Shown: piece after piece, positions 19,340-55,640 of the stretch
Position numbering within the stretch: the first letter of the stretch is position 1
Layout: the number at the start of each line of letters is the position of its first letter
NCBI GenBank assembly: GCA_039096225.1
Contig: JBBPEB010000005.1
Coordinates: 558,001 to 622,000, forward strand
Reading direction: 5' to 3'
Source of the DNA: Blastocystis sp. Blastoise
Lineage: Eukaryota; Protista; Bigyra: Opalinata
Length of the DNA: 64,000 nucleotides
The notes under the pieces: model-generated
What the model was told of the DNA's origin: nothing
Seen by the model: the letters and a program-made list of their open reading frames with translations, nothing else
Databases searched by the model: none
Position numbers and translations under genes: made by a program

Positions 19340-22300
19340 AGAGACTAATAAAGTTTGAATAATAGAGATAAGAATAAAAATAAATAGAAGACTAGTAATA
19401 AAAATCTGAATAGAAGTATGGACAGTAATATAAGAAGAAACAGGAGTTATAGGTACAACCAGAAGAAGGAGAATAATCTATCAATATAGTAAAATTTGTT
19501 TCATAATAAGAAGAATTTGGAAAATAAAGTAACTAAATATGTATAAGGAAGATAAAGGAGAAATTAGGATTAATAGGAGCAAGTAATGAAATAGCAACAT
19601 AAGAATGATGAATAATAATAGAAGAAGAGGAAAGTAAATAAATATAATTGAAGAAGTAGTAGCATAAGAAGAAGAATATTATACAAAATATAAGAAGATG
19701 CAGTAGTAGTGTAAGAAGAAGTAATAGTATAGTTATACCACTATAAGAAGAAGAAGAAGAAGAAGAAGAAGAATCATAATAATAATAATAAGTAGAAGAA
19801 GAAGAACAAGTAGAAGTAGACTTATAAGAAGAATATCAAGAATGAGAATGAGAAAGAAAAGGGGAAAAAGAAGAAAGAGAAATAGAAATAGAAGAAGGAA
19901 GAGAAAATAAGTACAAGTAGAATGAGAAGAATAACAATAATAAGAAGTAGTGAAGTAGATATAGATATAGAAGATATAGAAAAAGTAGAAGTATATGTGG
20001 ATGTATAAGTAAAAAAAAAGTAGTGAAGTAGAAGTAGAAGTAGATGTAACTAAGTAGAAGTAGAAGTAGAAGTAGAAGTAATTCTAGAAGAAGAAAAAGA
20101 AGAAAAAGAAGAAGAATGAGAATGAGAAGAATGACAAGATGTAGAAGTAGAAGTAGAAGTAGAAGTAGAAGAATAAGAAGAAAATAAGAAGAAAATAAGA
20201 ATAAACCAAGAATAAACATAATAAGGAAAACATCAGTAGAAGATAAGAAGAAGGAGAATAAGAATGATTAGAAGTATAAAAAAAAGAAGAAGTAGAAGAA
20301 GAAGAAAAAAAAAAAAGAAGAAGAAGAAGAAGAAGGAAAAGAAGGAGAAGGAGAAGAACAACAAGAAGAAGCAGAAGAAGCAGGACAAGTACAAGTACAA
20401 GGACAAGGAAAAGATGAAAGGCAAGAAAAGGGAGTACAACGATAAGGACAAGAAAGATAAGAATAAGGATAAGACGAATAAAGAAGAAGGACAAGGAAAA
20501 TAAGAATAAACCAAAAATAAGTATAATAATGAAAACATCAGTAGAAGCTAAGGATAAGTAGCATGAGAATGATTAGAAGTAGAAGTACAAGGATAATAAA
20601 AAGAAGAAGATGGAGAAGGGAGAAGAATATGTGGAAATAAAAGAAAAAACATGAAAATAAAATGTGGAACAAGAAGAGACTAAAAAGAGAATAGAAGGAG
20701 AGGAGTAAAATATGAATAGGAAGGAGAAGGATAAGAAGGATAAGAAAGATAAGAGGATAAGAATGACAAAGAGAAGGACAAGATGGAGCAAGAGATGAAC
20801 GAGAAGAACGAAAAGCAGAAGAAGGAACAAGAGAAGAAGAAGAAGTAGAAGTAGAAGTAGAAGTAGAAGTAGAAGTAGAAGTAGAAGTAGAAGTAGAAGT
20901 AGAAGTAGAAGTAGAGTAGAAGAAGAAGGAGAAGGAGAAGAAGAAGGAGAAGAAGAAGGAGAAGGAAAAGGAAAAGGAAAAGGAGAAGAAGAAGAAGAAG
21001 TAGAAGAAGAAGAAGAATAAGGAGAACAAAGGGAAAATAAGAATGATTATAAGAATAAGTATAAGGATAATAATAAGAAGAAGACGTAGAAGCAGAAAAT
21101 ATGTGGAAGTAGAAAAAGAAACATATAAAATATGGAACAAGAAGACTAAAAAGAGAATAGAAGGAGAGGAGCAAAATATGAATAAGAAGGAGAATAAGAA
21201 GGATAATGATAAGAAGGGGAAGAGTAGAAGAATGACAAAGAGAAGGAGGAGAAGGAAGAAAGAACGAGAAAGAGACGAATGGAGAAAGGAAAGAGAAGAG
21301 GGAGAAGGATAAGAAGAAGCAGAAGGAAAAGTAGAAAAAGGAGAAGCAAGAGTAGAAGAAGGATAAGAAGAAGCAGAAGGAAGAGTAGAAGAAGGAATAG
21401 AGAAGGAGAAGTAAAAACAGAAAGAGAAAGAAAAAAAGGAACAAGAGAAAAAGAAAGAGAAAGAGAATGAGAATGAGAAGAATGAAAAAGAGAAAGAGAA
21501 AGAAATAGTAGTATAGAAGTAGAAATAGAAGCAATAATAGTTGGAAAAGGAAAATTAGAAGAAGAAGAAGGTGGAGAAGAAAAAGAAGTAAAAGTAAAAG
21601 TATAAATAAAAGAAGAATAGGAAGGAGATATAGAAGCAGACGAATAAGAAGAAGTAGAATGAGCATGAAAAAGAAATAAAAGTATTAGTAATAGTGTAGA
21701 AGTAGAAATAGAAATAGAAGGAAAAGGAGAATTAGTAGTAGAAGAATGAGAAATAGAATATAGAAAAGAAATAGAAGAAGAAGAAGAAGAAAGAGAAGAA
21801 AGAGAAACAGAAAGAGAAGAACAAGGAGAAGTATAAGCACAAAGATAATGAGAAGAAAAAGAAGTAGTTGTAATAGAAGTGAATGTAGAAGTATAAGAAG
21901 TAGTAGAAATAGAAGTAGAAGTAGGAGTTGGAGTTGGAGTACAAGCGAAGTAGAATAGAAATATAAGTAGAAATATAAGTAGAAGAATGAGAAGTAGTAT
22001 TAGTAATAGTGTAGAAGTCGAAATGGAAGAAAAAGAATAAGAGTAAGTAGTAGTCGTAGAAATATGAGTATAAGCAAGTAGAAATAGAAGAATAAAGAAA
22101 AGAAGGAAAGAAGCTGAAGTAGAAGAAGTATAAATAAAAGAAGGTAAATATAAGAAGAAGAAGAAGAAGTATAAGGAAAAGAAGGTAAATATAAGAAGAA
22201 GAAGAAGAAGAAGTATAAGGAAAAGAAGGTAAATATAAGAATAATAATAATAATAATAGTAAGGAGAAGTAGTAAAAAAGAAGAAACAGAAGAATAAGGA

Positions 22301-25300
22301 GGAGGAGGAGGAGGAGGAGGAGAAGAAGAATAAGGAAAAGTAAAAAGGAGTAAAATTTTGAGAAATAGAACGAGAAGTAAAAGAATAATAAAAAGCAAAC
22401 TTTAATAAGTATGGATAGAAGAAGAAGAAAAAGAAAAAGAAAAATAATTAGAAATAGAATAATGAGATTGAAAATGATAAGAAAAAGGAAAATCATGAAA
22501 GATAATAGGAATAAGAATAAGAAGAATAAGTAGAAGTATAAGGAGGAGTATAAAGAAAAAGGAGATAAGGAGTAGAACAGAAGTAGAAGGTAATGTTGAA
22601 GAAAAATAGGAAGGCTGATAATAAGGAAGATAAAGAGAAATAGAAGGAAAAGGAGAATGTGAAGCAAAATAAGAATCACAAAAAGAAAAAGAAGAAGTAG
22701 AAAGAGAACGAGAAGAATTACATTTTTAGTGAGGAGAAAAAATGTAAAAAAAGAAGAAATATAATAATAAGAATGAGAACAAGAACAGGAATGAAAATAA
22801 GAAAATGAATGATACTACAAATTAAAGGAGTAAGGAGGAGAGAAAATATAGAGTAAAAAAAGATATAGAAGAAAGAGAAGATAGTGAATAGGAGAAGAAG
22901 AAGATAAAGTAGAAGAAGAAGTAGAGCGAGAAACAGAATAAAGTGAAAAGAAAAGTAGAATGAAAATAAGAAAGATAATAGGAATATAAATAAAATGTAG
23001 AAGAAGAAATAGAAGTAAAATGAGACGAATTTAGAAAAAAAATACATAAAGCAGAAGAATATGAAGAATAAGAAATGAGAAACGTACAAATAGAATAATG
23101 AGAAATAGACAAGAAAGTAGAAGAAAGGCAAAAAAAGAAGAATCTGGAAAAAATAAGAATAAGAATAAGAATAAGAATAAGAATAAGAATAAGAATAAGA
23201 ATAAGAATAAGAATAAGAATAAGAAGACTAAAAAGGAGAAATTAAAATAAAATAGAAGGAGAAAAAGGAAAAGATAAAGAAGAATAAGAAGGAAAATAGG
23301 AATAGTAGAATAGAACAGAGATTGAAAAGTATAAAGAAAACAAGAAGAAGAAGGAAAGCAATAAGATGAAGAAATAGAATAAATAATAAGAAAATGAAGA
23401 ATACGAATAATGAATATAAGAAGCAGAAGTGAATCAAAAGAAGGAGAAATGTAAGAATGATACTAATAATAAGAAGAAGAATAAGAAATAAGGCTAAGTA
23501 GAAGTAGAAGAAAAATACTAATTAGAAAAAGAATACTAATTAGAAAAAGAAAATAAGGTTAAAATGTATAACTACAAATAGAATAATAGAGAGAAAGATA
23601 ATGTTAGTAAAATTTATAGAATAAGAAGTAGAAGGAGAATAATAAGAGAAAAGATTAGGAAGTAGAAGTAGAAGAAGAGTATGAAAGATAATGAGAATAG
23701 GAATAAGAATATGAAATGAATAAGAAATACAATAAGAAGTAGAAGTAGAATGAGGGTGAGAAATATAATGTGAATAAGAATAAAAAGCGAAAGGTGAATA
23801 AGTAGTAGAAGTTGATTAAGAAGTAGACAGAAAATGGAAAGTAAAATAATAAGGATAATGAAATGGAAAAAAAAATAGGAATAACACTAAGAATACTAAA
23901 TGAAATAGAAAAAGAATAAAAAGATGAAATAGAAGAAGAATCAAAAGAAGACAGGAAAAGAAGTAGGAGGTGAAGTAGAACGAGAATAAGTGTAAGAATA
24001 AGAATAATTGGAGTATTAGAAGATTAAGAAGAAGGAAAATAGGAATAAGAAGTAAGGTATAAATTACTATAAGAAAAAAGAAGTATAAGTAACTAGAGAA
24101 GTAGAAGAAAAACGAAAATATAAATAAGACGATGAAAGAAAAGGAGAAAGTAAAATATGAAAGAAAAAGAGAAGAAAGAGTATAATAATAATAAGAAGAA
24201 GAAAGAGAAATTGAAATATAAGGAGAAGTTGAATAAGAAGAAGAATGTGAAATATAAGAAGAAGCTGAATAAGATAAAGAAGTAAAAGTAGAAGACGGAG
24301 AAGAAAATATGAATACGAATATCAGGAAGGATAATAAAAGAAGATATCAACAACAAAGAGAACAAGAAGCATCAAGGAAGCATAAGTATAGAAGAAGATT
24401 AAGGAGAAGAAAAATATGGTGTAAAGGTGAAAGAAGAAGAAGAAGAATAGAAAAAAGGAGAAGGAGAAGAAGGAGAAGAAGAAGAAGAAGAAGAAGAAGA
24501 AGAAGAAGAAGAAGGAGGAGAAGAAGGACATGAAGGAGGAGGAGAATGACAAGAATGGCAAAAAGTAGGAGAAGTAGAAGAAGTAGAAGAATAAGAAAAA
24601 GAAGAAAGAGAAGAAAATAAGAATAAACCAAGAATAAGCATAATCAGGAAAAAACAGTAGAAGGTAAGGATAAGTAGAATGAGAATGATTAGTAGTAGAA
24701 GTATAAGAAGAAAAAGAAGAAGAAGAAGAAGAATATATGGAGCAAGAAGAGAATAAAAAGAGGGAGAAGGAGAGGAGCAAAATATGAATAAGAAGGAGAA
24801 TAGGAAAGATAAGAAGGATAAGAAGGACAAGAAGGACAAGAAGGACAAGAAGGACAAGAAGGACAAGAAGGAGGAGGAGAAGAAGAAAAACTATATGAAG
24901 AAGGATAAGAAGGAAAAAGAAAAGTTGGGGAAAAAAGATGAAAGAGAAAGAAAAGGATAAGAAGAACAATTATAAGAAGAAGGACAAGAAGGAAAAAAAG
25001 AGGAGAAGAAGAAAAATTATAAGAAGAAGGACAAAGAGGAGGAGGAGAAGAAAGAGAAGAAGAAGAAGGATAAGAAGGGCAAGAAGGAGAGGAAGGAATG
25101 TCAAGAAGAAGAAGAAGAAGAAGAAGGATAAGAATGAGAAGAAAAACAAGAAGAAGGATAAAGAAAAGTAAAAGTATAAATAGAAGGAGAATAAAGAAAA
25201 GGAGATAGAGATGGAGACAAAAAAGTAGACGTAGAAGGAGAAAAATAAATAAATAAAAGTATAGTAGTAGAAACAGAAGTATAAATAGAAGTATTAGGAA

Positions 25301-26290
25301 TAAGAAAATGAGAATTATTAGAAGAAGAAAAATGAGAAGAAAAATGAGAAGAAGAAGAAGAAGAAGAAGAAGAATGAGAAATTGAATATAGAAAAAAAGA
25401 AGAAGAAGAAAAGAGAAAGAGAAAGATAATAGCAAGAAGAAGTATAAGTATAAGAAGAATGAGAAGAATAAAGTAGTAGAAGCAAAAGCACGAGTACGAG
25501 TAGGAGTAAAAGCAGAACTACAAGTAGAAATATAAGCAGAAATATAAGTAGAATAATAAGAAGTATTATTATTAGTAGTGTAGCTGTAGAAATAGAAGAA
25601 AAAATAAAAGAGTAGTAGTAGTAGAAGAAATATAAGTAGAAGTACAAGTAGGAATAGAAGAATGAAGGAAAGAAGGAAAGAAGGAAGAAGCTAAAGGAGA
25701 AGAATTGCAAGGAGAATAAGGAAAAAAAAAAGGAACAAAATGGAATGGAAATGATAACGAGGGAAAAAAAGAAAAGAAGAAGAAGAAAAAAAAATAAGAA
25801 GATGTAGAAGGATAATAAAAGAAGAAACAACAATAATAATGAGAACAAGAAGTAAATCTATAATGAAAAGGAGAAGTGGAAAGGAAGTATAGTAGAGAAG
25901 AAGAATAATGAAAAGTAAAATAAGATGTAAAGGTGAAAGAAGCATAAGAAGAAGTAAAGTAGAAGAAAAAGAAGAATCATGAAAGGATAAGAAGAATGAA
26001 GAATAATGAAAAGGATAGGGATAAGAAGTATAATGAGAAGGACGAAGAAGTAATAGTAGAATTTGTGAAGAGGTAATAGTAAAGAAAAGAAAAGTTTATA
26101 TCTATACATAAAAGAAGAAAAATTAGAGTAAGATGTACAGTAGAATTATGAATTAAGAATTAACAATAAAGAATAAAGAATAAAGATTAAGAATGAAGAA
26201 TGAAGAATTAAGAATGAAGAATTAACAATAAAGAATGAAGAATGAAGAATGAAGAATGAAGAATGAAGAATGAAGAATGAAGAATTAATA
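19340..26290 (+). repeat. Purine-rich low-complexity tract of MULE-A with internal duplicated modules and (GAAGTA)n, (AATAAG)n, (AAGAATG)n microsatellites
   Basis: Read directly; inverted homologue at 49280-55640. Confidence 0.9.
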
Positions 26291-26939
26291 CCAATAAATC
26301 TAAAAAATATATAATATTATAAAAATAGAATAATAATAATATTATAAAGACAAAAAATAACATATATATTATTAATAGTCAGTTAAAACAAACTAAATAT
26401 ATTATTAAATACATATATACCTTAATAAAGACTTGAATCATTGCAATCTGTTTTTTTGGTTGTGCTTCAGTTTGATTGGTTTTACTAAAGAAATAAATAC
26501 GTAGAATAAATTAAATAGATAAAAGTATATATATATTAAAGAAACAACTAGATAGAAAAGTAGGAGCTAATTCAATTATAAAAATAATAATACTAATGAA
26601 AACAAAATAAATATGTTATGTGAATGATAAAAATATACTAATAGCATAGACATGAAATAAATATAGCAAAGAATAAACAAAATGAGAAAATGTAAAATAA
26701 TTATATACCTTAGATTCATCTTTATTGTTCACCAAGACCTTTAGAGTTGATTTGAAACTAGATATAGCTTTTTCTGAATATCTAAACAATACGCAACCAA
26801 TTGATCAACTGATTACTATATAAAACAAAATATTTGAAGAGAGTAAACTATATAATATATATATTTATGACTAGAAAACATACGTAGATCCATTTTATAT
26901 GTCTATAATGACAATATATGAAATAAAACAATATTTGAG

Positions 26940-27130
26940 TTTCAAGAAATAATCATTCTGAGGATGGGAACAGGGATAAAACAGCCTAAATAGCGGAATC
27001 AACCTCTTTGATAAAAACTGTTTTGTGATTCAGTGAACAAGTTTTAAAAATAATTTCTAGAGATTCAAAGTATGGGATAAAAAGTCTTCTTTGATATGGT
27101 CCCTATTCTTAAATTTTTTTAGAATTACTT
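26940..27130. promoter_or_regulatory. Putative bidirectional promoter between divergent spliced units (MULE-A copy)
   Basis: Complex sequence well conserved with 48350-48530 (inverted). Minus-strand GT-AG exons lie to the left and plus-strand exons to the right. Confidence 0.45.
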
Positions 27131-27732
27131 CAATCCGTGAAAGTCTTATTCAGCATCAGCTTAAATGAACTGCTGAAAGAAGTATATTTTTTAAATATTA
27201 GTATATGGATTATTTAATTATATATATGGCTATTTTTTATTTTATAATTATATTATATTTTTATATGTATATTATTATAGATTAGGAATGAAATGAGCAC
27301 AGATAATGGACCAATTGGTGATTCGTTTATTCTGGTATATGTTAATTTTATCTAATATTATTCATATAGGCTGAAGAGACTAGTTTGAAGAGCCTGTAAA
27401 CGTTAGAAATTCATATTGGAAGAAGTTCCATTTGTCAACATTTCTTCACTGGAAGTCTTGATCAAATATGTTTAAGTGGTATGTTATTTTATATATATTT
27501 ATCTATCTTATAATTATATAGTGAAGAGTTTGAATCAAAACAAAATGAATTACATTTTTCAGAAGATGTTGATATATTGGATGTTTTTTAAATTTATTCA
27601 ACCTTGTTATTGTCTTTTAAGTTTATAACTATATTATTTATAATGTATATTATCTACATATATATAGAAATGGTGAATGATTATCTATTTGAGTTCTTTT
27701 CTTTTCTTATTCAGCACCATCATTGAGTACTT

Positions 27733-27774
<42 letters not shown>

Positions 27775-28093
27775 TAATTATTATATCTTCTATAGATACA
27801 AGCAGAAAATAAATGATGATTATGTATCACAATTCTAAAAATAATATAAATCAGTTAAAAGTATATATTTATTTTATTTTATTTATTGTTAGCTAAATAT
27901 AATAATTTCTAATTGTTTAATATATGTATATTATATATGTATATATTATTTATTATCGTTTTTATTCTATTATATATATATATAATATTATTCTTCATTT
28001 ATTATTATATATAGATGAGATAATAATTAATTCGACTATCTCCTCATTATACACACATTGTATATATATATCTACATATATTCTAATAATTTT

Positions 28094-28141
<48 letters not shown>

Positions 28142-28453
28142 TTGATTATACTATATGAACACTATCTTCTTATCAATACAATTAATATTTATATATATTT
28201 TTATCAATATATGCATATTTCCTATTAACTTTTTTTATAATCTATTTAAAAATTTTGTATATAACATTTTATTACTATTATATATTCTCTATTTGTTCTT
28301 ATAATATATTATTTAATATGTTATATATATATATATATATAGTACTATCACATTTATTATATGTCTATTTCTCCTTAATCGATATTACTACATAATTTAT
28401 ATAATAAGATGTATATATATTCTTTTCTTTTCTGTTATTCTTTTTATTCTTTT

Positions 28454-28491
<38 letters not shown>

Positions 28492-30412
28492 ATTACTTTT
28501 TTTATTTATTCATTATTTATATATAAATAGTTATTGTGGTATACAAGATTAGTGGCTATTATGTATCTATATTATTCCGTATAAATTTTATTAACATATA
28601 CATATATTTATATTTATATATATATATATGTATAGTATTCTATTCTGAGTTATGTACATCATTTTTTATTATATATAAATAAGGTATATAGTTTTATATA
28701 TATTTTTATATTAAATTATAATCCCCTCTAGATAATTTATTTTATTGTTTTATAATTCATATAATTATTATTATTATTAATATTTATTATATATTCATCC
28801 TATATGTATAAATATATTTAATAACTATCACATTATATGTGTTTATTTATTTTTATTTAGTTTTATAAGTTATATATATATATATATATACTTAGAGATA
28901 TATATATATAAATTATTATTATGTATTATTTATTTTTATTATATTATTACCATAATATGTCTATTTGCTTACATATGTATATATAGTTGTTTTATTTCAT
29001 ATTCAAACGTTGCTTTAGTGAACAAATATATATATTTATATATGATATTATAGAATTATTTTGTATTCATTATATATATATATTATGCATTAATTTTTAC
29101 ATGTTTGTTATACTTAATATATATATATATATGTAATTATTTTATATCTATATATATACATATATATATATAGATATCATTGATATTAATATTCAAAGTA
29201 TATATATATAAACATATATAGACTTATATATAGTATTTTATATGTATTCATATTATAATATATTATGTATAGTTTAATAGTTATATGTAAGTCATCCTTT
29301 CATGTTTCTTATGAATTTATATAAATATATTCCTTTAATTCTGATTATGTATATATTATTATATATATCATCTTATTCTATATATATATATATTATGTAT
29401 TTTTTATTTAATATAAAAGATAATATTTTGTGTATTTAATATTTTATATCAATTATTCTTCTATTTAACTCTTTTATATCATTTATCTTTCTACAACTTT
29501 ATTATTTATTATCTTTTTTAAATACCATTTACCATATAGTTTATTATACATACATATAGTAATAGTCATAGCGCTTCTTTATGTATGTTTTATTCAATTA
29601 TGTTAGTATATGTATTGTGGTATATATGTATATTAATTGTCGTTTATTTATATATCGTTTTGTATTTAATTTAAAATAAAGATTAATAATTATTATGTAT
29701 ATACTCTTATATTTTATTATTTTTTATATTATATTTATATTATTTTTGTATATATAGGATTAATATATATATAACATAATTAATTGTGAGAAATTTATTT
29801 TTGGTAATATATTAAGTCTGCTCTCTTGTATATATATATATATATCTAATTCTTTACTATATGTTTTCCAACTTTATGTTTCTATTTTATGTATATATAT
29901 ATATATATATATACAATATGTTCTATTATTATGAGATATATAGTGTCTAATGAGATTTTAATATGGTCCATCTACAGAATATATATTTATATATATATTA
30001 ATTACTTTTATTCTTATAACTATTATGTTCTCATATTATATTTAAATATATATTTTTTTCAATTTCCTTTTTACTTTTTGAAATTTTTTTTTAAATATAT
30101 ATATATATATAACTTTCTACTGTTAATTAGTTCTTTTCTAATGTATATCTATATTTATTTATATTTATATATGTTATTCATATGTATGTTATTAAATGTA
30201 TCTATAGAATCTAAACTTCTAATTGAAACTACTATAAATAATAGTGATACAACTATTTGTATATATATATATTAATAATTTTTATAAAGCTTATTATATA
30301 GTATTTTATTAATATTTTAACCAAATTTATTTATATATTATTATTCATTTTCTTTATTCTCTAACTATTTATAGAACATATCCTTAGCTTGTCTCCTATG
30401 TATATATGGCTT

Positions 30413-30460
<48 letters not shown>

Positions 30461-30563
30461 TCTCTTTTTATATCTCTGATACATTATACTTATCACATAT
30501 TAATAGTTATCTTTTATTATAAGGTTTTTATTATATAGATTATTATTAATAGGTATAATGGAG

Positions 30564-30619
<56 letters not shown>

Positions 30620-30686
30620 TATAATTATATTTTGGGTTTTTGTCTGTTAAACATATATACATGGTTATATTCAAATAATTAATATT

Positions 30687-30754
30687 CCTTAGACTGAATA
30701 TGGTTAGTAGCAATCATTAATAGATTGTTATCAGGTTCAATTCCTGATCTAGGG
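30687..30754 (+). ncRNA. 68-nt tRNA-like cloverleaf, copy B (MULE-A)
   Basis: ccttaga|ctga-atatgg-ttag|ta|gcaatc-attaata-gattgt|ta|tcagg-ttcaatt-cctga|tctaggg; the differences from copy E are all G-U compatible. Confidence 0.85.
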
Positions 30755-32274
30755 TCATATATTATATTTTTTATAAAAATTTTCAATATTTTTCTCTATA
30801 GATATTTTCATTCATTATAGCCAGTATGAAAGGGTATATTGAGTTTCATGTAATTGAATAAACTCTATACATTGCTAGTCGCTTTTCTATAATGTTTTTA
30901 GTTTACTATATTCAACACACAACACATTCACAATTGCATTCACTTAGAATACCATATTCATTATTTTGTTTTGCTATATATCCTATTGATCAATTCTACA
31001 CACAAATAAAAAATAAATATTCATCAATAACACCTTGAAGTCTATAAACACGCAATGCATTCTTTGTTTATACTCTTAAAAAGCATTTAAATCATCTATA
31101 TTAATATGATTGACACTAAAAGTCATTTGTAACATTTCTAAACTACTTTTAAAACTGTTGAAGAACCTTGACAAATCTACATTACCTCGAAAACTATTAT
31201 AATCAACTTTGGCTTATACGAGTCATAATTAAATTTAAATTATTAACAGAATGTCAGAATAAAGGCATTCTAACTCAACATATCACCAAGAAAAATCAAT
31301 TGTGTTTGTAACTTCTCTAAAATTGAATTAATTAGTGAAATACGTATTCAAACTAATGTTGAATTTAAATTCAAACACACACAAACTCACCTTTTCTGAC
31401 AGTTCTACACATTTAGGCAATCTAGTGACTATCACATAATCGACTAATTTTTGTTGTCTTCATCAAGTCTAACTATTTCCTCATGACCATAACCATTAAT
31501 TTCATTTTATGTAACACTCTATAAATAATTAATCAATTAACTATTTTTATTTACATAAATACATACTCCATCAACAACAAGAAGACATCATGAGTAAGAA
31601 TAACGGTTTAAACTATTTAAATAAAATAATAAATAATAAAAAGTAGAAATATTAAGATTTCAATAAAATTTAATAAGTTAATTTATAGTGAAGTTTCAAT
31701 AATCATATAAAAAATATGATTAATTTCGTTTTTGTACGTTCTAAGCATATATCTATTTATATATAGGCCCTAGGAGTATAGTAGAGTACCTTGCGGTCTC
31801 CATTGGCAGATTGATCTGTTGTGCTATGTTCTCTTTCTCTATGGTGAGCTTGTCTGAGTGGTGTAAAGTGGTTGAGCTAGATGATCTGCTATTGTATTGT
31901 GGTTTAAATTGGATGATCTGACGTCACCATACAAAACTATTTCTTTAGGCTTTCTCACTGAGTAGCAATTGGTCGGTTATATTAACTGAGCGTGGCTTGA
32001 TACTTTCAAAAAAAAAATTACTTAATTGGATAAATAGATTGGTCTTAAATTACAGAGAAGGATGGATCTCTTCACTTAATCACTACCTATACAACTCAAA
32101 TGCTTATAATTAGAGTTAGTTTGTATTAGTCATATTCAGATTCTAGATGTATATATTTTCTGTATTTATTTTCTTTATAATTATAATTATAATATTATAT
32201 AGATATTTATATAGGTTATTATATAGTTATTAAGCCTAGTTCTTGTTCTTCTTGTCACTAACTTCTTGGTTTTT

Positions 32275-32317
<43 letters not shown>

Positions 32318-32439
32318 GACTTTTTTTATTTTGCTTATATATTATTATTTTCTTTATTATTAAGAATTACTTTTATTTTTCTTTATTATTAGTTTAATTC
32401 AATATATTTATAGACTTATTTATATTTTTTATTCTTTTT

Positions 32440-32526
<87 letters not shown>

Positions 32527-32539
32527 CAAAACTTTTATA

Positions 32540-43250: not shown

Positions 43251-43252
43251 AG

Positions 43253-43289
<37 letters not shown>

Positions 43290-43443
43290 ATATAATTAAA
43301 AAAAAGAAAAAAGTGCATAAATTAATATTAATAAAAACTTCAAATAAGTACATAGAAGAAACTAATAATATGTATAAATAGAAATAATTTTCAAAAATTA
43401 AGAAATTTATATTATAAAATCAAAACATAAGAAGTTAATAATA

Positions 43444-43474
<31 letters not shown>

Positions 43475-44996
43475 CATAAAAGAGAAGAACCAAGAATTTA
43501 GTGACAAGAAAAGCAAGAACTAGATTTAATAGCTATATAACAACCTATATAAACATTAATATAATTATATAATTATATTTATATAAAAAAAATGTAGAAA
43601 ATATATACATCTAGAATCAGAATATGAGTTAAACCAAGTAACTTCAAATATGAATATTTGAATTGTAGATGTAGTGATTATGTGAATAGATCATGATTCT
43701 GTATGATTCAAGACAAATCTGTTTAGACATTTGACCAATTGATTTTTTGAAAGTTTCAAGCAACGCTCAGTTAACATAGCCAAGCATTTCCCACTCATTG
43801 ATAAAACCTAAAGAAATAGTTTTATATGGTGACGTCACATCATCCCATTTATAACCACGACACAATAGCTGACCATCTAGTACAACCACTTTACATCACC
43901 TAGATTAGCTCATAATAGAGAAAGAGAACATACCAGTTTAGATCAATCTGCCAATGGAGACTGGAAGGTACTCTAATATACTCCTAGGGACTATATATAG
44001 ATAGATATATGCTTAGAACATACAAAAGCTAAATTAATCATATTTTTTATATGATTATTGAAACTTCACTATAAATTAACTTATTAAAAATTATTAAAAT
44101 CCTAATATTTCTACTTTTTATTATTAATTATTTTATTTAAATAGTTTAATCAGTTATTCTCACTCCTGATGTCTTGTTGTTGTTATTGGAGTATGTATTT
44201 AAGTAAATAAAATTAGTTAATTGATTAATTATTTATAGAGTGTTGAATAAAATAAAATTGATGCTTCTTGTCATAAGGAAATCGTTAGACTTGATGAAGA
44301 CAACAAGAATTAGTTGATTATGTGATACTCACTAGATTGTCTAAATGTGTAAAATTGTCAGAAATGATGAGTTTATGTGTGTTTGAATTTGAATTCTACA
44401 TTAATTAAAATACGTCTTTTAGTAATTAATTTAATTTTAGGGAAGTTACAAACATAATTGATTTCTCTTGGTGATATGTTGAGATAGAATGCCTTTATTA
44501 TGAATTTCTATTAATAATTTAAATTTAATCATGACTCGTATAAGCCAAAGTTGATTATAATAGTTTTTTAGGTAATGTAAAATTTGTTAAGGTTCTTCAA
44601 AAGTTTTTAAAGTTGGTTAGAAATGATTCTTAGTGTCAATCATATTAATATAAACAGTAGAAATGCCTTTTAAGAGTATAAACAAATAATGTATTGCGTG
44701 TTTATAGACTTCAAGATATTATTGATGAATATTTATTTTTTATTTGTGTGTAAAATTGATGAATAGGATACATAACTCAACAAAATAATGACTAGATAAT
44801 TTTGGGTGATTGTAATTGTGAATGTGTTTGGTTTTAAGTAAAGGTATCTAAAATTATTATAAAAGAGCGACTAACGACGTATAGAGTTGATTCAATTGCA
44901 TGAAACTCAATGTATTTATTCATATTGGTTCTAATGAATGAGAATACCTATAGGGAAAAAACATTTAAATTTTTTTATAAAAAATATAGTATACAA

Positions 44997-45064
44997 CCTT
45001 AGATCAGGAATTGAACCTGATAGCAATCTATTAATGATTGCTACTGACCATATTCAGTCTAAGG
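44997..45064 (-). ncRNA. 68-nt tRNA-like cloverleaf, copy E (MULE-B; positional orthologue of B)
   Basis: ccttaga|ctga-atatgg-tcag|ta|gcaatc-attaata-gattgc|ta|tcagg-ttcaatt-cctga|tctaagg; all stems are Watson-Crick. Confidence 0.87.
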
Positions 45065-45083
45065 AATATTAATTATATGAATA

Positions 45084-45116
<33 letters not shown>

Positions 45117-45834
45117 TTGAAGAAAAGAGACTATAAAAATATTGTAATTATATATATATATACTCTATTACACCTATTAATACTAACCTAAATAATAAAA
45201 ACATGTAGAATAAAAAGATTATTTCAATATACAATAGAATATAATGTAATTAAGAATAAAGTTAAAAATAGAATATTAGCAAACAATATATATAATAAAT
45301 ATATACAATATATACTATCTATATTAAGTTGTATACGAACATAGAAGATAAGCTAAAGATACGTTCTATATATAGATTAAAAAAAAATTAATATATATAT
45401 AAATAAAATAAACACATTATATTGTTATAATAGAAAATACTACATAGCAAGCTATATAAATATAAATAAAATACATACAAAAGGATTGTATACATTATTT
45501 GTAATAATTCATAAAAGCTGATTATAGACTATATATATAAAATGAATGAATAAGACGGCATGAATTAATTAAGGGAATACCAAGTCTATATATATATATA
45601 TATGAATATATACATATATGTAATTATGAGAAAAATATATATATAAAGTAAAAAATATATATATTTAAATATAACATAGGAACATATTATGTATATGTAT
45701 TAAAACAATTAAAATACATACTCTTTACGTAGAATCTATTTAATATCTTCACAAACTATATATATTAATAATAGTACACTATAGTGAGTATAAATGTATA
45801 TAATAGAAAAGAAAGCTGGAAAATATAAAGAAAA

Positions 45835-45877
<43 letters not shown>

Positions 45878-46760
45878 AGAAAATAAGGTTTAACATAATA
45901 CAAAAGTAAATCATTCAAAACAATTATATATATCCTTAATCCTATATATAATAAAAATGATATTAGTATAGTATTATAAACAAAAAGAAAATGTAGTATA
46001 CATAACACTAAGTGTATATATAATTAGTATCAAAATAAATAGATAATATATATAAAAGGAGATAAATACAAAGTATATATATTATCATAGAAAATATACT
46101 AGTATAATTGAACAAAAGAGATAAAAAGAAGAGTTATTACTGTTACTACATATATATACATAATTAACTATAAACAAATTATATTATAAAATGATAATAC
46201 ATAATATAGTTATAGAAAGAAAAAGTGATATAAAAGAATAAAATAGAAGAATAGTTGAGATAAAATTATATATACAAATAATATTACCTTTTGTGTCAAT
46301 TATAAAAAATGTATTATATATATAATAAGATAAAAAGACTATATACTTAAAAACTCATGAGAAAAATAAAAGGATAACTGATATATTACTATATATAAGT
46401 CTATAAGTTTATATTTATATAATAAGTATATATAAAAGTATATATATAATATATTTATATATACCTTAAATACATAAAAATAATGTAGTAATAGAACTAA
46501 AGACCACTATATATAGATAATTCTTCATTATTCTATTTATATATAACTTTGACTTTGATAAATAATATATATATATATATATAAAGTTTAAGAATAAACA
46601 ATTGATATGAACTGATTCTAGTATATATTATCAACTTCCAAAATAAAACATATATCAATTTTCTAAAGAGTATATATTTGGTAAATATATCTGTGAATAT
46701 GTTATATAGAGAGAAAAATGTATAAAATAATAATATAAAAAGAATACAATAAAAGTCTAT

Positions 46761-46845
<85 letters not shown>

Positions 46846-49279
46846 TTCTTCAACTAAAGCAACATTCGTATATTTATATAACACCTATATAATATATATA
46901 TGTAATTACAGTTTTACTAGTTATATTTTTATATAACTAATAAAACTATAGAGACATGAATAACAGAAATATAAACAATAGGATATTATTAGTAATTATA
47001 GGTACATAATATAAATTATATAAAAAAAATAAAAAATTATTGTACGGAAAATAGAATAATATATAAAAATAATGTGAAACAATATACTACAATAAAACAA
47101 TTACTTACATATAAAAACTATATACCTTAGATATAAAAATTGATGACCATGAAGTTTATAACATAAGGGAAACGTCACATTCTCTATATAAAAATACTAG
47201 TTAATATATAAATATATATATATATATATTAAGAAGTAATAGAAAATAATATGCTAATAATTAAATATATATATAATATACCTAGTCACATAATAGTATT
47301 GATGTAGAGAAGCTAATGAGTACATAGCTTAATAATACTATATATATGAATAAGAATAAAATATATCGAAAATAAATAATACATATATATATATATAAAC
47401 TATAATAAAAGAATGATAATTAATAGTCCTATATAGAAAAATAATATAATAAATTAATAAAATATTAAGAATTTATAAATAATAAAAATATATATATATA
47501 TATTTGAACCATATATCAATGTTAGAGCCTCAGTTATAACAAAAATAAATAACTACAATATACAAATTTAATTAAACAAATATATATAATTTTAATAATA
47601 TAAAAATAAAAAAATATATACTTTTTAGCCATATTCTTCTAGTATTTTTTTTTGTATATATAACCATATCAATTTACTCCATATATCTATAGAAAAAAAT
47701 AATTATTTAATATATTTATATACTTTTAAGGACTCGATAATTGTGCTGAAATCGAAAAGTTACAAAAATTCCAAAACAATAATCACTTGCCATTTCTATA
47801 TAATTAGATACAATATAGCATTAATAACATAAATATATACTTCTGATAAAAAAATAAAATAATAAAAATCAAAAGAAGGACCTAGACATCAATTTTCTTA
47901 GTAGATGGAGACCAATTACTTTTTTTCTTTTGAATTTCCTAAATAAATAATTAAATATACAAACAAAAAACAAAATAATATACCACTAGAACATACACCA
48001 AAGAATATTCTTAAAGAGGAAATTCCGATCATTGCGTTTTCTTCCAATATTGTAGCCAACTCCACCGGGCTCTCTAAATCATGTTTCTAAACCTATATAA
48101 ATAATGGTAAATCAAATAAGTATATACGTGAAAGAATGAATCACTAATTGGTTTATTATCTGGATTCATTTCAAGCCTAATCTATAATAATCTACCTAAT
48201 AAAATATAATATAAATATAAATAATAAAATAACCTTCTAAATAAGCAAATAATCCATATAATAATATTTAAAAAATATTCTTTTTTAGGAGTTCATTTAA
48301 GCCGTAGCTGAATACGGTTTTCCAAAGATTTAAGTGATTCTGAAAGACTCCAAGAATAGGGACCATATCAAAGAAGACTTTTTATACCATACTTTGAATC
48401 TCTAGAAATTATTTTTAAAACTTGTTCACTGAAACCCAAAAAAGTTTCTATAGAAGAGATTAATTCCGCTATTTAGGCTGTTTTTCCTCTGTTTCCATCC
48501 TCAGAATGGTTATTTCTTGAAAATCAAATATTGATTTATTTCATATATTTTCATTATAAGCATATAAAATGAATCTATGTATGTTTTCTAGTTATAAATA
48601 TATATATTATATAGTTTACTCTCTTCAAATATTTAATTTTATATAGTAATCAGTTGATCAATGGGTTATTTCTTGTTTATATGCTCAAAACAAACTTCAT
48701 CTGGTTTCAGATCAATTCAAAAGGTCTTGGTAAACAATACTGATGAATCTAAGGTATATAGATATTTTTCATTTTCTCATTTTGTTTATTTTTTGCTATA
48801 TCTATTTCTTGTCTATGCTATTAATACATCACTATCATTCTAATAGCATCCCTATCTTTTTTTAATTTTATATTATACTTTTTATAATTGAATTAGCTCC
48901 TATTTTTCTATCTTGTTGTTTTTCTAATATGTTTATACTTTAATTAATTTTATTAATTTATTCTACGTATTTATTTATAGAATCTTAGCGTATTTAAGCA
49001 CAACTTGGGAATCAGATTGCGATGATTCAAGTCTTTATTAAGGTATATATGTATTTAATAATATAGTTAGTTTGTTTTAACTGACTATTAATAATATATA
49101 TGTTATTTTTTTCTTTATATTATAATTATTAATATTCTATTTTTATAATATTATATATTCTTTAGACCTAGTGGTATTTTTATTGTTTCTTCTATAAAAC
49201 AAAAAATTGATTACAAATATTATTAGTCTATTAGGAAAGTTGCAATTTATTATTCTTTTATTTATTAAATTTTTTGGTT

Positions 49280-52200
49280 TACAAAATTTCATTCTTCATT
49301 CTTCATTCTTCATTCTTCATTCTTCATTCTTCATTCTTCATTCTAATACACTTCTTACTACATCTTTTTCTTCTTTTTTGTATAGATATTAATTTTTCTT
49401 TATTTGTTTTCATAACTATTACCTCTTCACGAATTCTACTATTATATTTTATTATTATACTTCTAATTATCCTTTCCTTTTCATTCTTCTTCTTCTTCTT
49501 CTTATCCTTCTTCTTATCCTTTCATTCTTATTCTTATTCTTCTTACTTTACGTCTACTACTTATTCTTCTTCACCTGTACATCTTATTCTACTTCTCCTT
49601 ATTCTCCTTCTTCACTTATGTTTCCTTTTCTTTTTTTTCTCCTTGTAAATTTACTTCTCCTTGTTATTGTCATCTTCTTTTTATTATTCTTAGATATATT
49701 TCTCTTATTCTTATTTTTCTTCTCCTTCTTCAACTTCTTCAACTTCTTCTTTTTCATATATTGTTGTTACTTCTTTTTTTACTTCTTTTTTTACTTCTTA
49801 TTTTACTTAATATTTTGTTTCTTATTTAGTTTTTCCATATATCTCACTTTCTCCTTCTTATTCCACGTCTCCTTATTTTTTAATTTCTCTTTCTTATTTT
49901 TATTACTATCCTCGTGCTACTTCTCGCTTTCCTTCATATGCGACTTTCTCATTCTCCTTTCCCTTCATCATACTATTCATATTTTCATTCTGCTTATCTA
50001 GTTACTTTTACTTATTTTTTTTATTGTAATTTCTATTTTACTTCTCATTCCTATTTTCCTTCTTTTAATTGATATTATTCTTTAATTATTATTATTTTTA
50101 CGCTTATTCTCGTTCTGCTTCGCCTTCTACTTATTCTTGTCTCCTGTTAATTCTTCTTCTACTTCAGCATTTCATTCTTAATTTCCTTCTTATTCTAATT
50201 CTACTTCTTATTTCTGGTGTTATTCCTTTGTTTTCATTTCATAAGCCTTAGTGTCTACTTTCCATTTCTCTTTACTATTCACTCAACTTTTACTACTTCT
50301 TCATCTTCCACATTTTATTCTTATTCACCTTATTTTTACACTCTTATTCTACTTCTATTTCTGCTTGTATTTCTACTTCATTTTTTATTCTTATTCTTAT
50401 TCATGATATCTTTCTCTTCTTATTCATGATATCTTTCTCTTCTTATTCATGATATCTTTCTCTTCTTACTTTACTTATACTTCCTAATCATTTCTCTTCT
50501 TATTCTACTTCTATTTCTTGTTCTACAATCTTATTATCATTATCTTTATACTATTCTGCTTCTAGTTAGCCTTAACTTTTTTTCATTCTTCTCCTCCTCC
50601 TTTTGTATCTTCTTTTTCTTATTATTATTATTAGTATTGTCCTTCCATTTCTCATTCTTTTTATTCACTTCTGCTTATCATACTCCTTATTCGTATTCTT
50701 CATTTTCTTATTATTTATTCTAATTCTTCATCTTATCACTTTCCTTCTTCTTCCTTCTTTTCTTATACTTTTCTATCTTCAATTTATTCTATTATTCTTA
50801 TTTTCATTCTTATTAAACTTATTTTTTATTTCTCCTTCTACTTATTATTATTCTCCTTTATATCTTCTTTCTTCTCCTTCTATTTTCATTTCTCCTTTTT
50901 ATTCTTCTTATTCCTATTCTTATTCACTTCATTCTTATTTTTATTGTACTCCTTCCACTTCTAAACTTTCTCTCCTTAATATTCTTCTTTTTATTCTACT
51001 ATTTATCTCATTTTCCTTCTACTAACACTTCATATTGTCATCTTTCTTATTTTATTCTTATTCTCATTATACTTATACATATGGTTCTACTCATACTTAT
51101 TGTTCTCCTTCTACTTCATTTATACTTTTACATCTATTCATACTTCTCTTATGGTTCTACTACTACTCTCTTAGTCATATTCTTATTCTTATTGTTCTCC
51201 AAATTCTTCTTTTACTTGTATCTACTTTCTTGTCTAGTTCTCCTTACTCTGCTGGTATACTTCTCACTTTTTATTTATATATATTCTTCTACTTTTGCGT
51301 ATTCTATTTTCACCAAATTCTTCTCACTATCCTTCTATATCTTATTCTAATTCTTACTTTTTCTCCTATTATCTTTCTTTTTTAAACTTCTACTTTTCCT
51401 TCTCTTTGTTCTAGTTCTAGCTTTGGTTCTTCTTCTTCTTCTTCTTCTTCTACTTTTTATCTTCTTCTTATTCCCTATCTTCTCATTCTTTTATATCATC
51501 TTTTTTCTCTATATTTTCTTTTTCTTCTTCTTATTTGTATCGTCATTCTATTTCTTATTCTCATTCCTCTCTTTTTCCTACTATTCTCATCCTATTTCTT
51601 CTTTTTCAAATTCTCTGTCATGTATTCTCAGTTTAAGTCTACTCATTTTCCTTCTGCTTCTCCTTTTTTCATATACTTATTATTTTACATCAAATTCTTC
51701 TTTTCCTTTTGTTTCTCCTTATGTGGTTTATTATTATTCTCCAACATGTTTTTCTTCAACATCATCATCTCCTTTTGCTTCTACTTCTTCTCTTCATTTT
51801 CCTTTCTCTTCGTTGTACTTCTACTTATCCTTTTTATTCTTATTCCTATTATCTTTCATATTTTCCTTTTTCTTCTCATTCTCACTCTCTTTTTGATATT
51901 CTCCTTCTCCTTCTATTTCTTATTATCGTTCTATTTATATTAGTTCTTGTTCTTCTTATTTTACTTCTCATTCTCTTTCTAATTATATAGTCTCTCTTCC
52001 TTTTCTTTATTCTTCTCCTTCTTTTCACGTTTTTACATCATTATTATTATTTTCATTCCTTTTTTATTCTGTTCTTATTCTATTCCTTATACTTCGTCTT
52101 CTTCAGTTTTTTTTCATTCATTACTTTATTCTTCTATTTCTACTTGTACTTATACTTTTTGTTTACTTGTACTTATATTATTACTTACTTTCATTCTTAT

Positions 52201-53958
52201 TCCAATTTCTACTACTACTACTAGTTCTATTACTACTTGTTATTATTCTTATTCCTATTTCTTTCTACTAGTATTTATTCTTATTCTAATTCTACTTATC
52301 ATTGTACTCGTGCTTCTATTCTTACTTTTATTTATACATGCACGTCTACTTCTACTTTCTTTTCTACTTCTAGTTCTACTTATACTTTCTAGTTTTCCTT
52401 CTTCTTCTTCTTCTTGTTCTTTACTTCTACTACCACTACTTATGACTATTTCTCCTTCTACGTTCACTTCTCCTTTTACATGTACTCGTACTACTATTAA
52501 TTCTTATTCTTCAATTTGAACTTCTACTCTTTTTCGTCTACTTTTTATTTTAGTTCTATTATAATTCGATTTCTTCTACTTCTACTTATTCTTCTACTTC
52601 TAGTACTTCTTGTTTATCAACTTATATTCATCATTTTACATCTACTTATACTAGTATAACTTCTTTTTATTATTATTTATATTAGACTCTTTTAATTCTA
52701 CTCCTTATTCCTATTATATTTTTCTTCTATTTCTTCTATTTCTTCTTCTATTTGTACTTATAATTATACTTCATCTATTCTTATTCATATTCTCTTTCTC
52801 ATTCTTCTATTTATATTTATAATTATACTTCATCTATTCGCCTTTTCTTTTTCCTATTTTACTTATACTTTGTTTCTTCTATTTATACATACATAATTGT
52901 GCTTCTCCTTCTGCTTCTAAGTCTAAGTCTAAGTCTATTTACACTACTACTACTTCTACTACTTCTAGTACTTTCTCAGTCAGTTTTTATTCCATTCTTA
53001 TTCTTATTCTTATTCTTATTCTATTCTTATTCTTGTTTTTTCCAGATTCTTCTTTTTTTGCCTTTCTTCTACAGGCTTGTCTATTTCTCATTATTCTACT
53101 TGTATGCTTCTCATTTTTTATTCTTCATATTCTTCTAATTTAACGTATTCTGTTTTATTCTAAATTCGTCTCATTTTGCTTCAATTTTTCTTCTACATCT
53201 TATTTATATATTCCTATTTTCTTACTTATTTTCATTCTACTTTTCATTTCCCTTTATTCTGTTTCTCGATCTACTTCTTCTTCTACTTTATCTTCTTCTT
53301 CTCCTTATTCACTATCTTCTGCTTCTTCTATATCATTTTTTACTCTATATTTTGTCTTCCTCAGTATTCTTTTTATTTGTAGTATCTTTCTTTTTATTTT
53401 TGTGATTCCTCTTCTTGTTCTTATTCTTCTTATTATATTTCTTCTTTTTCAAATTCTTCCTCTCCTCATTTTCATTTAGTTCTTCTTGTTTTCCTTCTGC
53501 TTCTTTTTATTTTTGTTATTCTTATTTTACTTCACACTCTCGTTTTCCTTCTATTTCTTTTATCTTTCTTATTATCATCCTTTCTATTTTTCTTCAACCT
53601 TAGCTTCTCCTTCTGCTTCTACTCCTTATCTCCATTTTCTTTATACTCCTCCTTATACTTCTACTTATTCTTCTTATTCTCATTCCTATTATCTTTCATG
53701 CTTTCCTTTTTCTTATCATTTTCAATCTCTTTATTCTATTTCTCATTATTTTTCTTTTTCTTTTTCTTCTATCCATACTTATTAAAGTTTGTTTTTTATT
53801 ATTCTTTTACTTCTCGTTCTATTTCTCAATATTTTACTTCTTTTTACTTTTCTTTATTCATCTCATTTCCTCTTCCTCCTTATTCTTCTGTTTCTTCTTT
53901 TTTACTACTTCTCCTTACTATTATTATTATTATTCTTATATTTACCTTCTTTTCCTTA

Positions 53959-53991
<33 letters not shown>

Positions 53992-55640
53992 TATTTACCT
54001 TCTTTTCCTTATACTTCTTCTACTTCAGCTTCTTTCCTTCTTTCCTTTATTCTTCTATTTATACTTGTTCTTCTACTCATATTTCTACTACTACTACTTA
54101 CTGTTATTTTTTTCTTCCATTTCGACTTCTACACTATTACTAATACTACTTCTCATTCTTCTACTTATATTTCTACTTATATTTCTATTCTACTTCGCTT
54201 GTACTCCAACTTCAACTCTTACTCCTACTTTTGCTTCTACTACTTTTTTATGCTTCTACATCCATTTCTATTACAACTACTTCTTGTTCTTCTTTTTCTA
54301 TTTCTCTTTCTTCTTCTTTTTTTTTCATTTTCATTCCATTATTGCTATTCTTCTATTTCTTCTTCTTATTCTCATTCACATTCGTATTATTAGTATTATT
54401 TTTTCTTCTTCTACTTCTTTCATTCTTGTTTCTTCTATTTCATTTCTATATTCTATTTCTCATTCTTCTTCTTCTCTTTCTCATTTTCTTCTTCTTCTTC
54501 TTCTTCTTCTACTGATTCTCATTTTCCTTTTCCATCTATTTCTACCTATTTCTACTTCTGTTTCTACTACCATACTTTTATTTCTTCTTCTTTCTCATTT
54601 TATCTCAACTTATTCGTCTACTTCTCTATCTCCTTTTCAATATTCTTCTTCTCATACTTTTTCTTCTATTGATTCTTTTACTTTTACTTTTACCTTATTC
54701 TTGTCCTTATTCTCTTTCTCCTTTTTCTCTTTTCTTTTCCTTCTTCTACTTCTATAATTTCTTTCTTCTCCCCCTTTTCTTTGTGGTTCTTCTCTTTCTC
54801 TTTCTTCTTCTACTTTTTCTTCTTATAATTTTATTTTTTCATCTTCTTCTCCTTCCTCCTTCTCCTTCTTTTGATTCCTCCTTTTCCTTCTTCTCCTTCT
54901 TCTTAATCTTTCTTCTTCTCCTTCTTCTATAATTTTTCTTCTTCTCCTCCTTCTATAATTTGTCTTCTTCTCCTTTTTCCTTTTGCCATTCTTGTCATTC
55001 TTGTTTTTTTTTGTCATTCTCCTTCCTATTCTTTTTCTTCTCATTCTTCTCCTCCTTCTCTTTCTTCTTCTGTTTATTTTTTCCTTCTTCTCTTTCTCGT
55101 TCTTTCTTTCTTATTCTCCTTCTCTTTGTCATTCTTATCCTTCTTATCCTTCTCCTTCTTATTCATATTTTGATCCTCTCCTTCTATTCTCTTTTTAGTT
55201 TCTTCTTTTTCCATTTTTATTCACATGCTTTTTCTTCTACTCCCACATATGCTTCTCTTTCTCCGTCTTCTTCGTATTATTATTCTTATGCTTCTACTTC
55301 TAATCATTCTCATTCTACTTATCCTTACCTTCTATTGATGTTTTCCTTATTATGTTTATTCTTGGTTTATTCTTATTTTCCTTCTTGTTCTCCTTCTCCT
55401 TCTCCTTCTTTTTCTTTTATTTCTGCCATTCTCTTTTTTTATCGTTCTTCTTGTCATTTCTTTCTCCTATCCTTATCCTTATCTTTGTCCTTTTTATCCT
55501 TCTCCTTCTACTTCTTCTTCTTATCCTTATCCTTATCCTTCTTCTTATCTTTATCCTATCCTTCTTCTTCTGCTCCTTGTCCTTGTCCTTGTCCTTCTCC
55601 TTCTCCTTCTTATTCTTGTCCTCTTTCATTTATTTGCATA
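49280..55640 (+). repeat. Pyrimidine-rich low-complexity tract (MULE-B), including a 24-bp triplication at about 50395-50470
   Basis: Inverted homologue of 19340-26290; for example 54109-54211 is the reverse complement of 21932-22034. Confidence 0.9.

Follow-up and report, generated by a model that had tools for sequence, protein, structure and literature searches.

Two giant Mutator-like elements (MULEs), M1 and M2, in the gut protist Blastocystis sp. Blastoise share about 15.1 kb of collinear non-coding internal DNA, whose history disagrees with that of their transposases and terminal inverted repeats (TIRs). Both lie in the window analyzed here, a stretch of 64,000 nucleotides (C31:558001-622000) in a genome of 33.3 Mb and 34 contigs. 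The conflict between the two histories indicates that this internal DNA, hereafter the cargo, was exchanged as a module between MULE families. It is likely that the block is the resident non-coding interior of the M2 superfamily, which consists of M2, ten non-autonomous relatives and some old fragments, and that it was transferred to the M1-type lineage by DNA recombination. For isolate Rus-B, from a Russian tortoise, the genome paper gives 33.3 Mb, 23% GC, 5.6-7.5% transposable elements and ~12% low-complexity DNA, and describes purine/pyrimidine low-complexity DNA as a hallmark of tortoise isolates (PMC10690189).

Both elements have the features expected of MULEs. Target-site duplications (TSDs), usually of ~9 bp (8-11) in MULEs, were read at M1 and M2 and measure 9 bp at each; copies of M2 and of the M1 type are found at several loci; and the ends of both start with GAG/GGA and carry inverted subterminal motif repeats, each motif being confined to the ends of its own element. 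Left and right ends are alike within an element (z=7.4 for M1, z=13.9 for M2), with TIRs that are short and imperfect, unlike the ~200-bp TIRs of maize Mu. Between M1 and M2, the similarity of the subterminal regions (780-1000 bp) is no greater than that of shuffled sequence (z 0-1.8).

The transposases are also far apart. That of the M1 type, as found in the copy on C10, is 37% identical to that of M2 over 607 aa by BLASTP and 40% identical at the amino acid level in a codon alignment, where nucleotide identity is 54.6% overall and 41% at third positions; the proportion of synonymous differences (0.705) is saturated and synonymous divergence is above 2. In the transposase tree, the M1 type (C10) is sister to a family found on C15 and C19 (52% amino acid identity, support 98/96), to the exclusion of M2. 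No cargo was found in this C15/C19 family within 3.3 kb downstream of the transposase, where a 10-bp minisatellite and unrelated unique DNA are present.

M2 is autonomous, with an intact transposase (Pfam MULE PF10551, 2.2e-10; SWIM PF04434, 3.3e-8; both above cutoffs): the annotated 853-aa protein P0001 maps onto its three exons, and the stop-free frame of exon 2 spans 58189-56270. Its seven copies, on seven contigs, are 99-100% identical in the transposase, both termini and each cargo segment searched; six of them measure ~20.36 kb and the C19 copy has a 2.8-kb insertion. M2 has very probably been active recently. M1, by contrast with the C10 copy, to which it is 93.5% identical over 17.3 kb and which has a 637-codon transposase open reading frame (ORF), lacks a counterpart of C10 local 25922-34975. 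What is missing lies between intron 1, which is rich in repeats, and a 33-bp minisatellite located just past exon 3 in C10, so that exons 2 and 3 are gone and tblastn finds no M1 transposase beyond exon 1. A further M1-type copy, C14:1088481-1107378, is 18.9 kb long; it has no CACTA insert, and its size fits that of M1 minus the CACTA element nested in it.

The original prediction, made from the letters of the window, had drawn the boundaries of the two elements exactly (Table 1), and the differing TIR motifs are present as it quoted them, the M1 and M2 termini being unalignable. The comparable exon that it judged to be about 36% identical is transposase exon 1, and the figure agrees with the tblastn value. 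Its size estimate of 20-27 kb was right for M2, at 20.4 kb, and too high for M1, whose own DNA amounts to 18.7 kb; the full 27.3 kb counts the nested 8.5-kb CACTA element. The five inverted collinear blocks that it listed all fall on one chain of long inverted matches.

This chain, obtained by an all-against-all comparison of the window, runs from about 19.4/20.3 to 35.33 kb in M1 and from 55.64 to 40.49 kb in M2, with an overall identity of 67-72%. Its three segments are 20255-28012 vs 55616-47462 (67.5%, 2005 bits), 28840-34894 vs 46844-40855 (71.1%, 2741 bits) and 34933-35327 vs 40884-40489 (72.9%), with ungapped cores at 89% (31173-31912/43845-44584) and 86% (26595-27142/48320-48867). In element orientation, the cargo opens with 6 kb of (AAG/GAA/GGA)-type sequence, continues with block B, 3 kb of spacer and block A, and closes with 2 kb of pyrimidine-rich sequence, of the type complementary to the purine tract, and a unique distal part. 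A purely compositional similarity is ruled out, as the unique blocks are 80-92% identical and collinear. Within the purine-rich tract, the collinear diagonal scores 2009 bits at 70.8% over 5.2 kb, against 64-67% and at most 1057 bits for off-diagonal low-complexity matches.

A palindromic segmental duplication or an assembly artifact can also be ruled out, the two arms being separate insertions with their own TSDs and only ~70% identical. Both MULEs interrupt the same gene, the RepHel of a second Helitron in the window (Helitron-2), whose front part is ORF 36159-39620 and whose back part is ORF 60025-60978. Excision of M2 with one TSD copy yields an open frame of 1,482 codons across the GGDFRQ helicase motif, which spans the M2 insertion site; when M1 is excised too, again with one TSD copy, the frame grows to 1,626 codons with its start at 8432. 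Since the frame is restored by excising both, the apparent palindrome is two separate MULE insertions, in opposite orientations, in one Helitron gene. The Helitron pieces were joined in a local script for this test of frame openness.

The disagreement between cargo and termini is most evident in the identities of the M1 cargo (26320-35327) to its other copies. It is 91% identical to the cargo on C10 and equally 91% to that on C14, both flanked by M1-type termini. It is also 92% identical, over 7.7 kb, to C26:1208894-1216521, which lies in an element (C26:1202853-1219034) with M2-type termini at both ends: its cargo is as close to that of M1 as the cargos of M1-family copies are to each other. 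For most other non-autonomous copies, which have M2-type termini, the identity is 82-86% (76% on C21 and 70-74% on C24), and for M2, with the same type of termini, it is 70-76%. By its cargo, M1 nests among elements with M2-type ends, whereas by its termini and transposase it is unrelated to them. The identity tables and the transposase tree thus give two different histories, one for the internal sequence and another for the TIRs and transposase.

The cargo of M1 is itself mosaic. Across the right end and almost all of the cargo, M1 and the C10 copy agree at 96-100%, but identity drops to 70-79% in a patch of 1.4 kb (27322-28713). The distal part of R (34500-35327) is 94-99% identical among M1, C10 and C28:527460 and 66-73% identical to all other copies; even the M1-type copy on C14 is only 69% identical to M1 there. 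This mosaicism points to more than one exchange, and the sequences appear to hold an older layer, represented by distal R, and a recent layer covering most of the cargo and roughly contemporary with the spread of the M1 type.

Vertical inheritance offers another way to explain a shared interior: a common ancestor of both lineages would have had the cargo, and purifying selection, acting on a non-coding RNA or a cis element, would have kept it alignable. The two lineages do share one architecture (TIR, exons 1-3, purine tract, B, spacer, A, R, TIR), the cargo persists in three or more non-autonomous lineages of independent origin, block A contains a tRNA-like gene, and the distal R of M1 and C10, only 66-73% identical to the others, implies an older shared layer. 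Against constraint, the cargo of the M2 superfamily diverges no more slowly than the right terminus (68-86% vs 90-93%), substitutions show no periodicity, and even the AT-rich spacer and slippage-prone tracts align while introns, untranslated regions and subterminal DNA do not. The M1 cargo, moreover, is far nearer to that of M2-type-ended copies than the cargo of M2 itself is, and the C15/C19 family, sister to the M1 type, has no cargo. We therefore consider this explanation quite unlikely.

Searches with blocks A, B and R revealed ~25 copies of the cargo in the genome: seven in M2, four of the M1 type, ten further copies, and four that are old or truncated, at ~77%. Block A has ~25 genomic copies; block B has 24 matches, of which 20 are nearly full-length and four partial, at 80-100% to M2. 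The M1-type cargo copies are on C31, C14 and C10, with a partial one at C28:527106, and the M1-type right subterminal region has five full or partial genomic copies. For 14 copies, among them the ten non-autonomous ones, C26 and C14, the description consists of search coordinates and percent identities. Each of the ten further copies (15.6-23.8 kb) has M2-type termini: the right one, which adjoins the cargo directly, is 90-93% identical along its full 904 bp, and the left one is 78-80% identical. Each also retains a degenerate remnant of exon 1, with three to eight in-frame stops, on the side and strand where it is expected. They are evidently non-autonomous relatives of M2. Insertions of 2.8-6.7 kb are present in other copies. 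Among the ~25 copies, block A, B, R and terminus searches showed no cargo outside a MULE or MULE fragment, and genome searches found no host source locus.

The four ~77% copies, on C16, C8, C23 and C29, bear on whether the block, or its center, was copied from a subtelomeric region of the host in the manner of a Pack-MULE. Those on C16 and C8 consist of the central 4.7 kb only and are located among multigene-family ORFs near contig ends, and their homology with M2 has a sharp boundary at 48398, which would favor such a capture. The C23 copy, however, still has region R together with an M2-like right terminus, 68% identical (C23:423480), which identifies the 77% group as old or truncated MULE copies, and neither a conserved ORF nor, on the ORFs scanned, Pfam homology was found in the block. 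Capture from the host is thus highly improbable.

An independent nested transposon is a further candidate, in which case the block would be a third mobile element, one that entered the two MULE families on separate occasions. Homology between M1 and M2 stops abruptly on the right, at 35327/40489, and nested insertions are common in these elements (the CACTA in M1, 35 kb in C10, 2.8-6.7 kb elsewhere). On the left, homology begins with the purine tract, ~300 bp past the M2 stop codon. Neither the right boundary (...CATTTCGACATTTTACTTGA|) nor the start of the purine tract has a terminal or inverted repeat, a TSD, or a Helitron or CACTA signature. Similarity to M2 continues from the cargo into the terminus in the M2-type-ended copies, in both families the block is placed and oriented alike with respect to the transposase, and all of the ~25 copies are in MULEs or MULE fragments, so that a separate mobile element seems very improbable.

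The cargo lacks detectable coding capacity. Substitutions in blocks A and B have no codon periodicity, and within these blocks no frame is open throughout all five available copies; the open stretches shared by the five are at most 52 codons long or lie in low-complexity tracts that are free of stops by composition. Ten of the 12 least repetitive cargo ORFs were scanned against Pfam, with no match above cutoff; no protein-database search of the cargo was made. Long ORFs on the pyrimidine-rich strand were set aside as compositional artifacts, and the purine-rich tract contains no long sense ORFs. The only Rfam match in the cargo, to mir-297, is not significant (32.6 bits against a gathering threshold of 90). 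ARAGORN reported a tRNA-Ile(AAT) at 40889-40959 (-) in the distal cargo of M2, which neither M1 nor C10 shares and which was rejected for its acceptor-stem mismatches. At the edge of block A, sequence and fold define a tRNA-like cloverleaf (Table 1); a 274-bp piece containing it has a 71-72% match at C14:150066-150339, near a third MULE family (transposase ~31% identical), and 87-bp matches to its region are found on C6, C10, C11 and C29.

Divergence within the M2 superfamily (83-86% for the blocks and 68-73% for R, against 90-93% for the right terminus) is as great in the cargo as in the right terminus, or greater, which argues that the cargo is not unusually constrained. The original prediction had offered two possibilities, an exchangeable module or a cargo more constrained than the transposase, and these figures, together with the missing coding signature, speak against the second. 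The first is supported by the 92% match of the M1 cargo to an M2-type-ended element, by transposases at 37-40% identity and by C15/C19 elements that have no cargo. The cargo also turned out to be non-coding, as it had appeared. Two findings named in advance as fatal to the idea did not emerge: no termini or TSDs of the cargo's own were detected at either boundary, and no decayed host genes by Pfam on ten ORFs or by frame comparison.

We thus favor recombination between families. The cargo would have long been resident in the M2 superfamily before moving into an M1-type MULE, until then similar to the short elements of the C15/C19 family; from that point, the two families would have kept exchanging sequence by gene conversion, with the shared cargo as homologous substrate. 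At least one transfer would be recent, and there was probably more than one. Likely routes are template switching or gene conversion in the course of excision-gap repair, and ectopic recombination between elements; nested insertion followed by deletions is a further candidate. The direction would be from the M2 superfamily to the M1 type. In all this the cargo behaves as passenger DNA, made up largely of slippage-prone purine/pyrimidine tracts.

Several points weigh against this reading. It is by parsimony that a direction is assigned to the transfer. The ten non-autonomous copies, C26 included, were judged by coordinates and identities, and percent identities over long low-complexity stretches are rough. 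Because of such sequence, the left cargo boundary is not placeable to the base. The low-coordinate boundary (right side) shared by the C15 and C19 elements shows no clear TIR, so their status as elements without cargo holds only for the 3.3 kb past the transposase. Finally, all independently derived non-autonomous lineages kept the cargo, which leaves room for a function in cis. If the cargo were a self-contained module that acts in cis to the benefit of every MULE carrying it, in terms of fitness, both its acquisition across families and its retention by every non-autonomous derivative would be explained; we hold this to be unlikely. The layout of the cargo, with blocks A and B, one of which bears the tRNA-like gene, a spacer of ~15% GC and (AAG)n/(CTT)n tracts, could give rise to a long hairpin or regulatory non-coding RNA, or might have a role in chromatin, insulation or replication.

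Recombination between Mu clades has a precedent in maize, where divergent clades of the MuDR family recombine, TIRs are uncoupled from internal genes and the recombinants still transpose (Hunter, McCarty & Koch 2023, PMC10401008). As in these recombinant, or 'heteromorphic', MuDR elements, internal sequence and TIRs have different histories in Blastoise. The maize exchanges, however, take place within one family and reshuffle mudra, mudrb and TIRs (PMC10401008), whereas the partners described here have transposases 37-40% identical and termini that cannot be aligned. The exchanged piece also differs, as it comprises ~15 kb of non-coding, largely low-complexity DNA, and the host is a stramenopile gut protist. 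Inter-clade recombination is thus already known; its scale and content here are new.

Pack-MULEs of rice, maize and Arabidopsis resemble the Blastoise elements in that MULE termini flank DNA other than transposase and non-autonomous copies amplify the cargo. Their cargo consists of short host-gene fragments, whereas the interior described here shows no sign of derivation from host genes: it is 15 kb long with no gene or protein homology detected, is confined to MULEs and is also present in an autonomous element, beside an intact transposase gene.

MULEs of protists, TvMULEs among them, measure a few kb. M2 differs from them in its 20.4 kb, of which three quarters is non-coding, and in its seven near-identical copies. 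A MULE transposase, a 9-bp TSD and multi-copy families are common to M2 and to protist MULEs such as the TvMULEs of Trichomonas vaginalis (PMC2725143) and those of a eukaryote-wide MULE survey (PMC6446971). Database relatives of the M2 transposase amounted to just two proteins, both from Blastocystis sp. Blastoise, in a search that does not inform on other isolates.

Families of DNA transposons are usually defined by a transposase and TIRs that co-evolve, and the internal DNA is presumed to have had the same history. In Blastoise, a non-coding block of 15 kb with a history of its own joins two MULE lineages that would otherwise not be recognizable as related at the DNA level. Inter-clade recombination of the kind described for maize MuDR is thereby extended to a eukaryote far removed from maize and to partners that have diverged much further. 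A practical consequence is that classification of transposable elements by internal sequence, as done by repeat-library builders, will merge distinct families. The work also adds a very large and probably recently active MULE, M2, to a genome whose publication gave only its bulk transposable element content. From mapped coordinates, we estimate that these elements occupy ~0.4 Mb (about 1.3% of the genome), a large part of which is purine/pyrimidine low-complexity DNA.

Table 1. Features of the two MULEs, their cargo and the interrupted Helitron gene, in window coordinates.
Feature	Coordinates	Strand	Evidence and remarks
Helitron-2 RepHel, N-terminal piece	8432..8823	+	Interrupted by the M1 insertion; frame test with M1 and M2 excised
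M1, non-autonomous M1-type MULE	8824..36109	+	9-bp TSD ATTTAAAAA at 8815-8823 and 36110-36118; GAG... termini, repeated TGATAAANNTGTC
CACTA nested in M1 left subterminal region	9755..18302	.	CACTATGGACATTTT...AAAATGTCCATAGTG, 3-bp TSD ATG; outside the shared cargo
M1 transposase exon 1 remnant (N-terminal DNA-binding region)	18338..18619	+	tblastn with P0001: 36.2% over 94 aa
M1 cargo part 1, purine-rich (AAG/GAA/GGA) low-complexity	19340..26320	+	Collinear with M2 55640-49300; GC skew ~+0.8, AT skew ~+0.6
M1 cargo block B, unique	26320..27480	+	Matches M2 47980-49170 at 82-91%
M1 cargo AT-rich spacer, 14-16% GC	27480..30660	+	Composition
M1 cargo block A, unique, GC-richer	30660..32280	+	Matches M2 43480-45090 at 80-92%; non-coding
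M1 cargo part R	32540..35327	+	Pyrimidine-rich tract and unique distal part 34500-35327
M1-type right subterminal region and TIR	35328..36109	+	No similarity to M2 counterpart (local alignment z=0.9 vs shuffles)
Helitron-2 RepHel, middle piece	36119..39584	+	Pfam Helitron_like_N 7e-56 and PIF1 1e-42, broken at profile position 146/223
M2, autonomous MULE, 20.4 kb	39585..59946	-	9-bp TSD ATTGTTTTA at 39576-39584 and 59947-59955
M2 right subterminal region and TIR	39585..40488	-	TGTTAGAAATACCC repeats
M2 cargo, 15.1 kb	40489..55640	-	R 40489-43480, A 43480-45090, AT-rich spacer, B 47980-49170, purine tract (element sense) 49300-55640
tRNA-like cloverleaf, 68 nt	44998..45068	-	Edge of block A; sequence and fold; GGTTCAATTCC T-arm
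M2 transposase gene	55935..59233	-	Exon 1 59233-58778, exon 2 58210-56390, exon 3 56222-55935
M2 left terminal region and TIR	59234..59946	-	78-80% counterpart beside the exon-1 remnant in non-autonomous copies
Helitron-2 RepHel, C-terminal piece	59956..60978	+	Pfam Pif1_2B_dom 1.8e-19; in frame with the middle piece after excision of M2 and one TSD copy

The termini of the nested CACTA element read CACTATGG...CCATAGTG, and its junctions fit an intact empty site in the C10 copy. The element has a purine-rich tract of its own, and a 908-bp piece of it (window 13137-14044) matches about a dozen other loci at 67%.

In the autonomous M1-type copy on C10, the left terminus (C10:161459-161999) is located ~35 kb away from the remainder, at the point that matches window 9362; the gap C10:126139-161459 points to a large nested insertion. 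A repeat of 4.2 kb, with 88-95% identity between loci, is present in transposase intron 1 of both this copy (C10:118468-122704) and the C19 element (C19:312193-315119). A third locus, C15:221500-225573, adjoins the C15 element and is not inside it, and the end of the repeat is also found at window 63756-64000. With the 35-kb insertion, the repeat in intron 1 and a 2.8-kb minisatellite, the C10 copy, which is the sole 'autonomous' M1-type element, may be inactive.

Within the distal cargo, window 34865-34955 is a ~90-bp palindromic repeat, both strands of which match the same places at many loci, including C10:70704, C4:886993, C3:622218, C13:431830 and C25:424660. It looks like a small miniature inverted-repeat transposable element.

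Counted along the Helitron, the insertion sites of M1 and M2 are separated by 3.5 kb, with the two elements in opposite orientations; the presence of both giant MULEs in the same RepHel gene may reflect chance or a target preference. The first Helitron of the window has an intact RepHel (ORF 1230-5906). Two inverted copies of this Helitron-1, 97.5% identical to window 1-6125, are located beside the C15 MULE (C15:194064-200220 and C15:204867-210773), each with an intact RepHel ORF of 1,497 codons.

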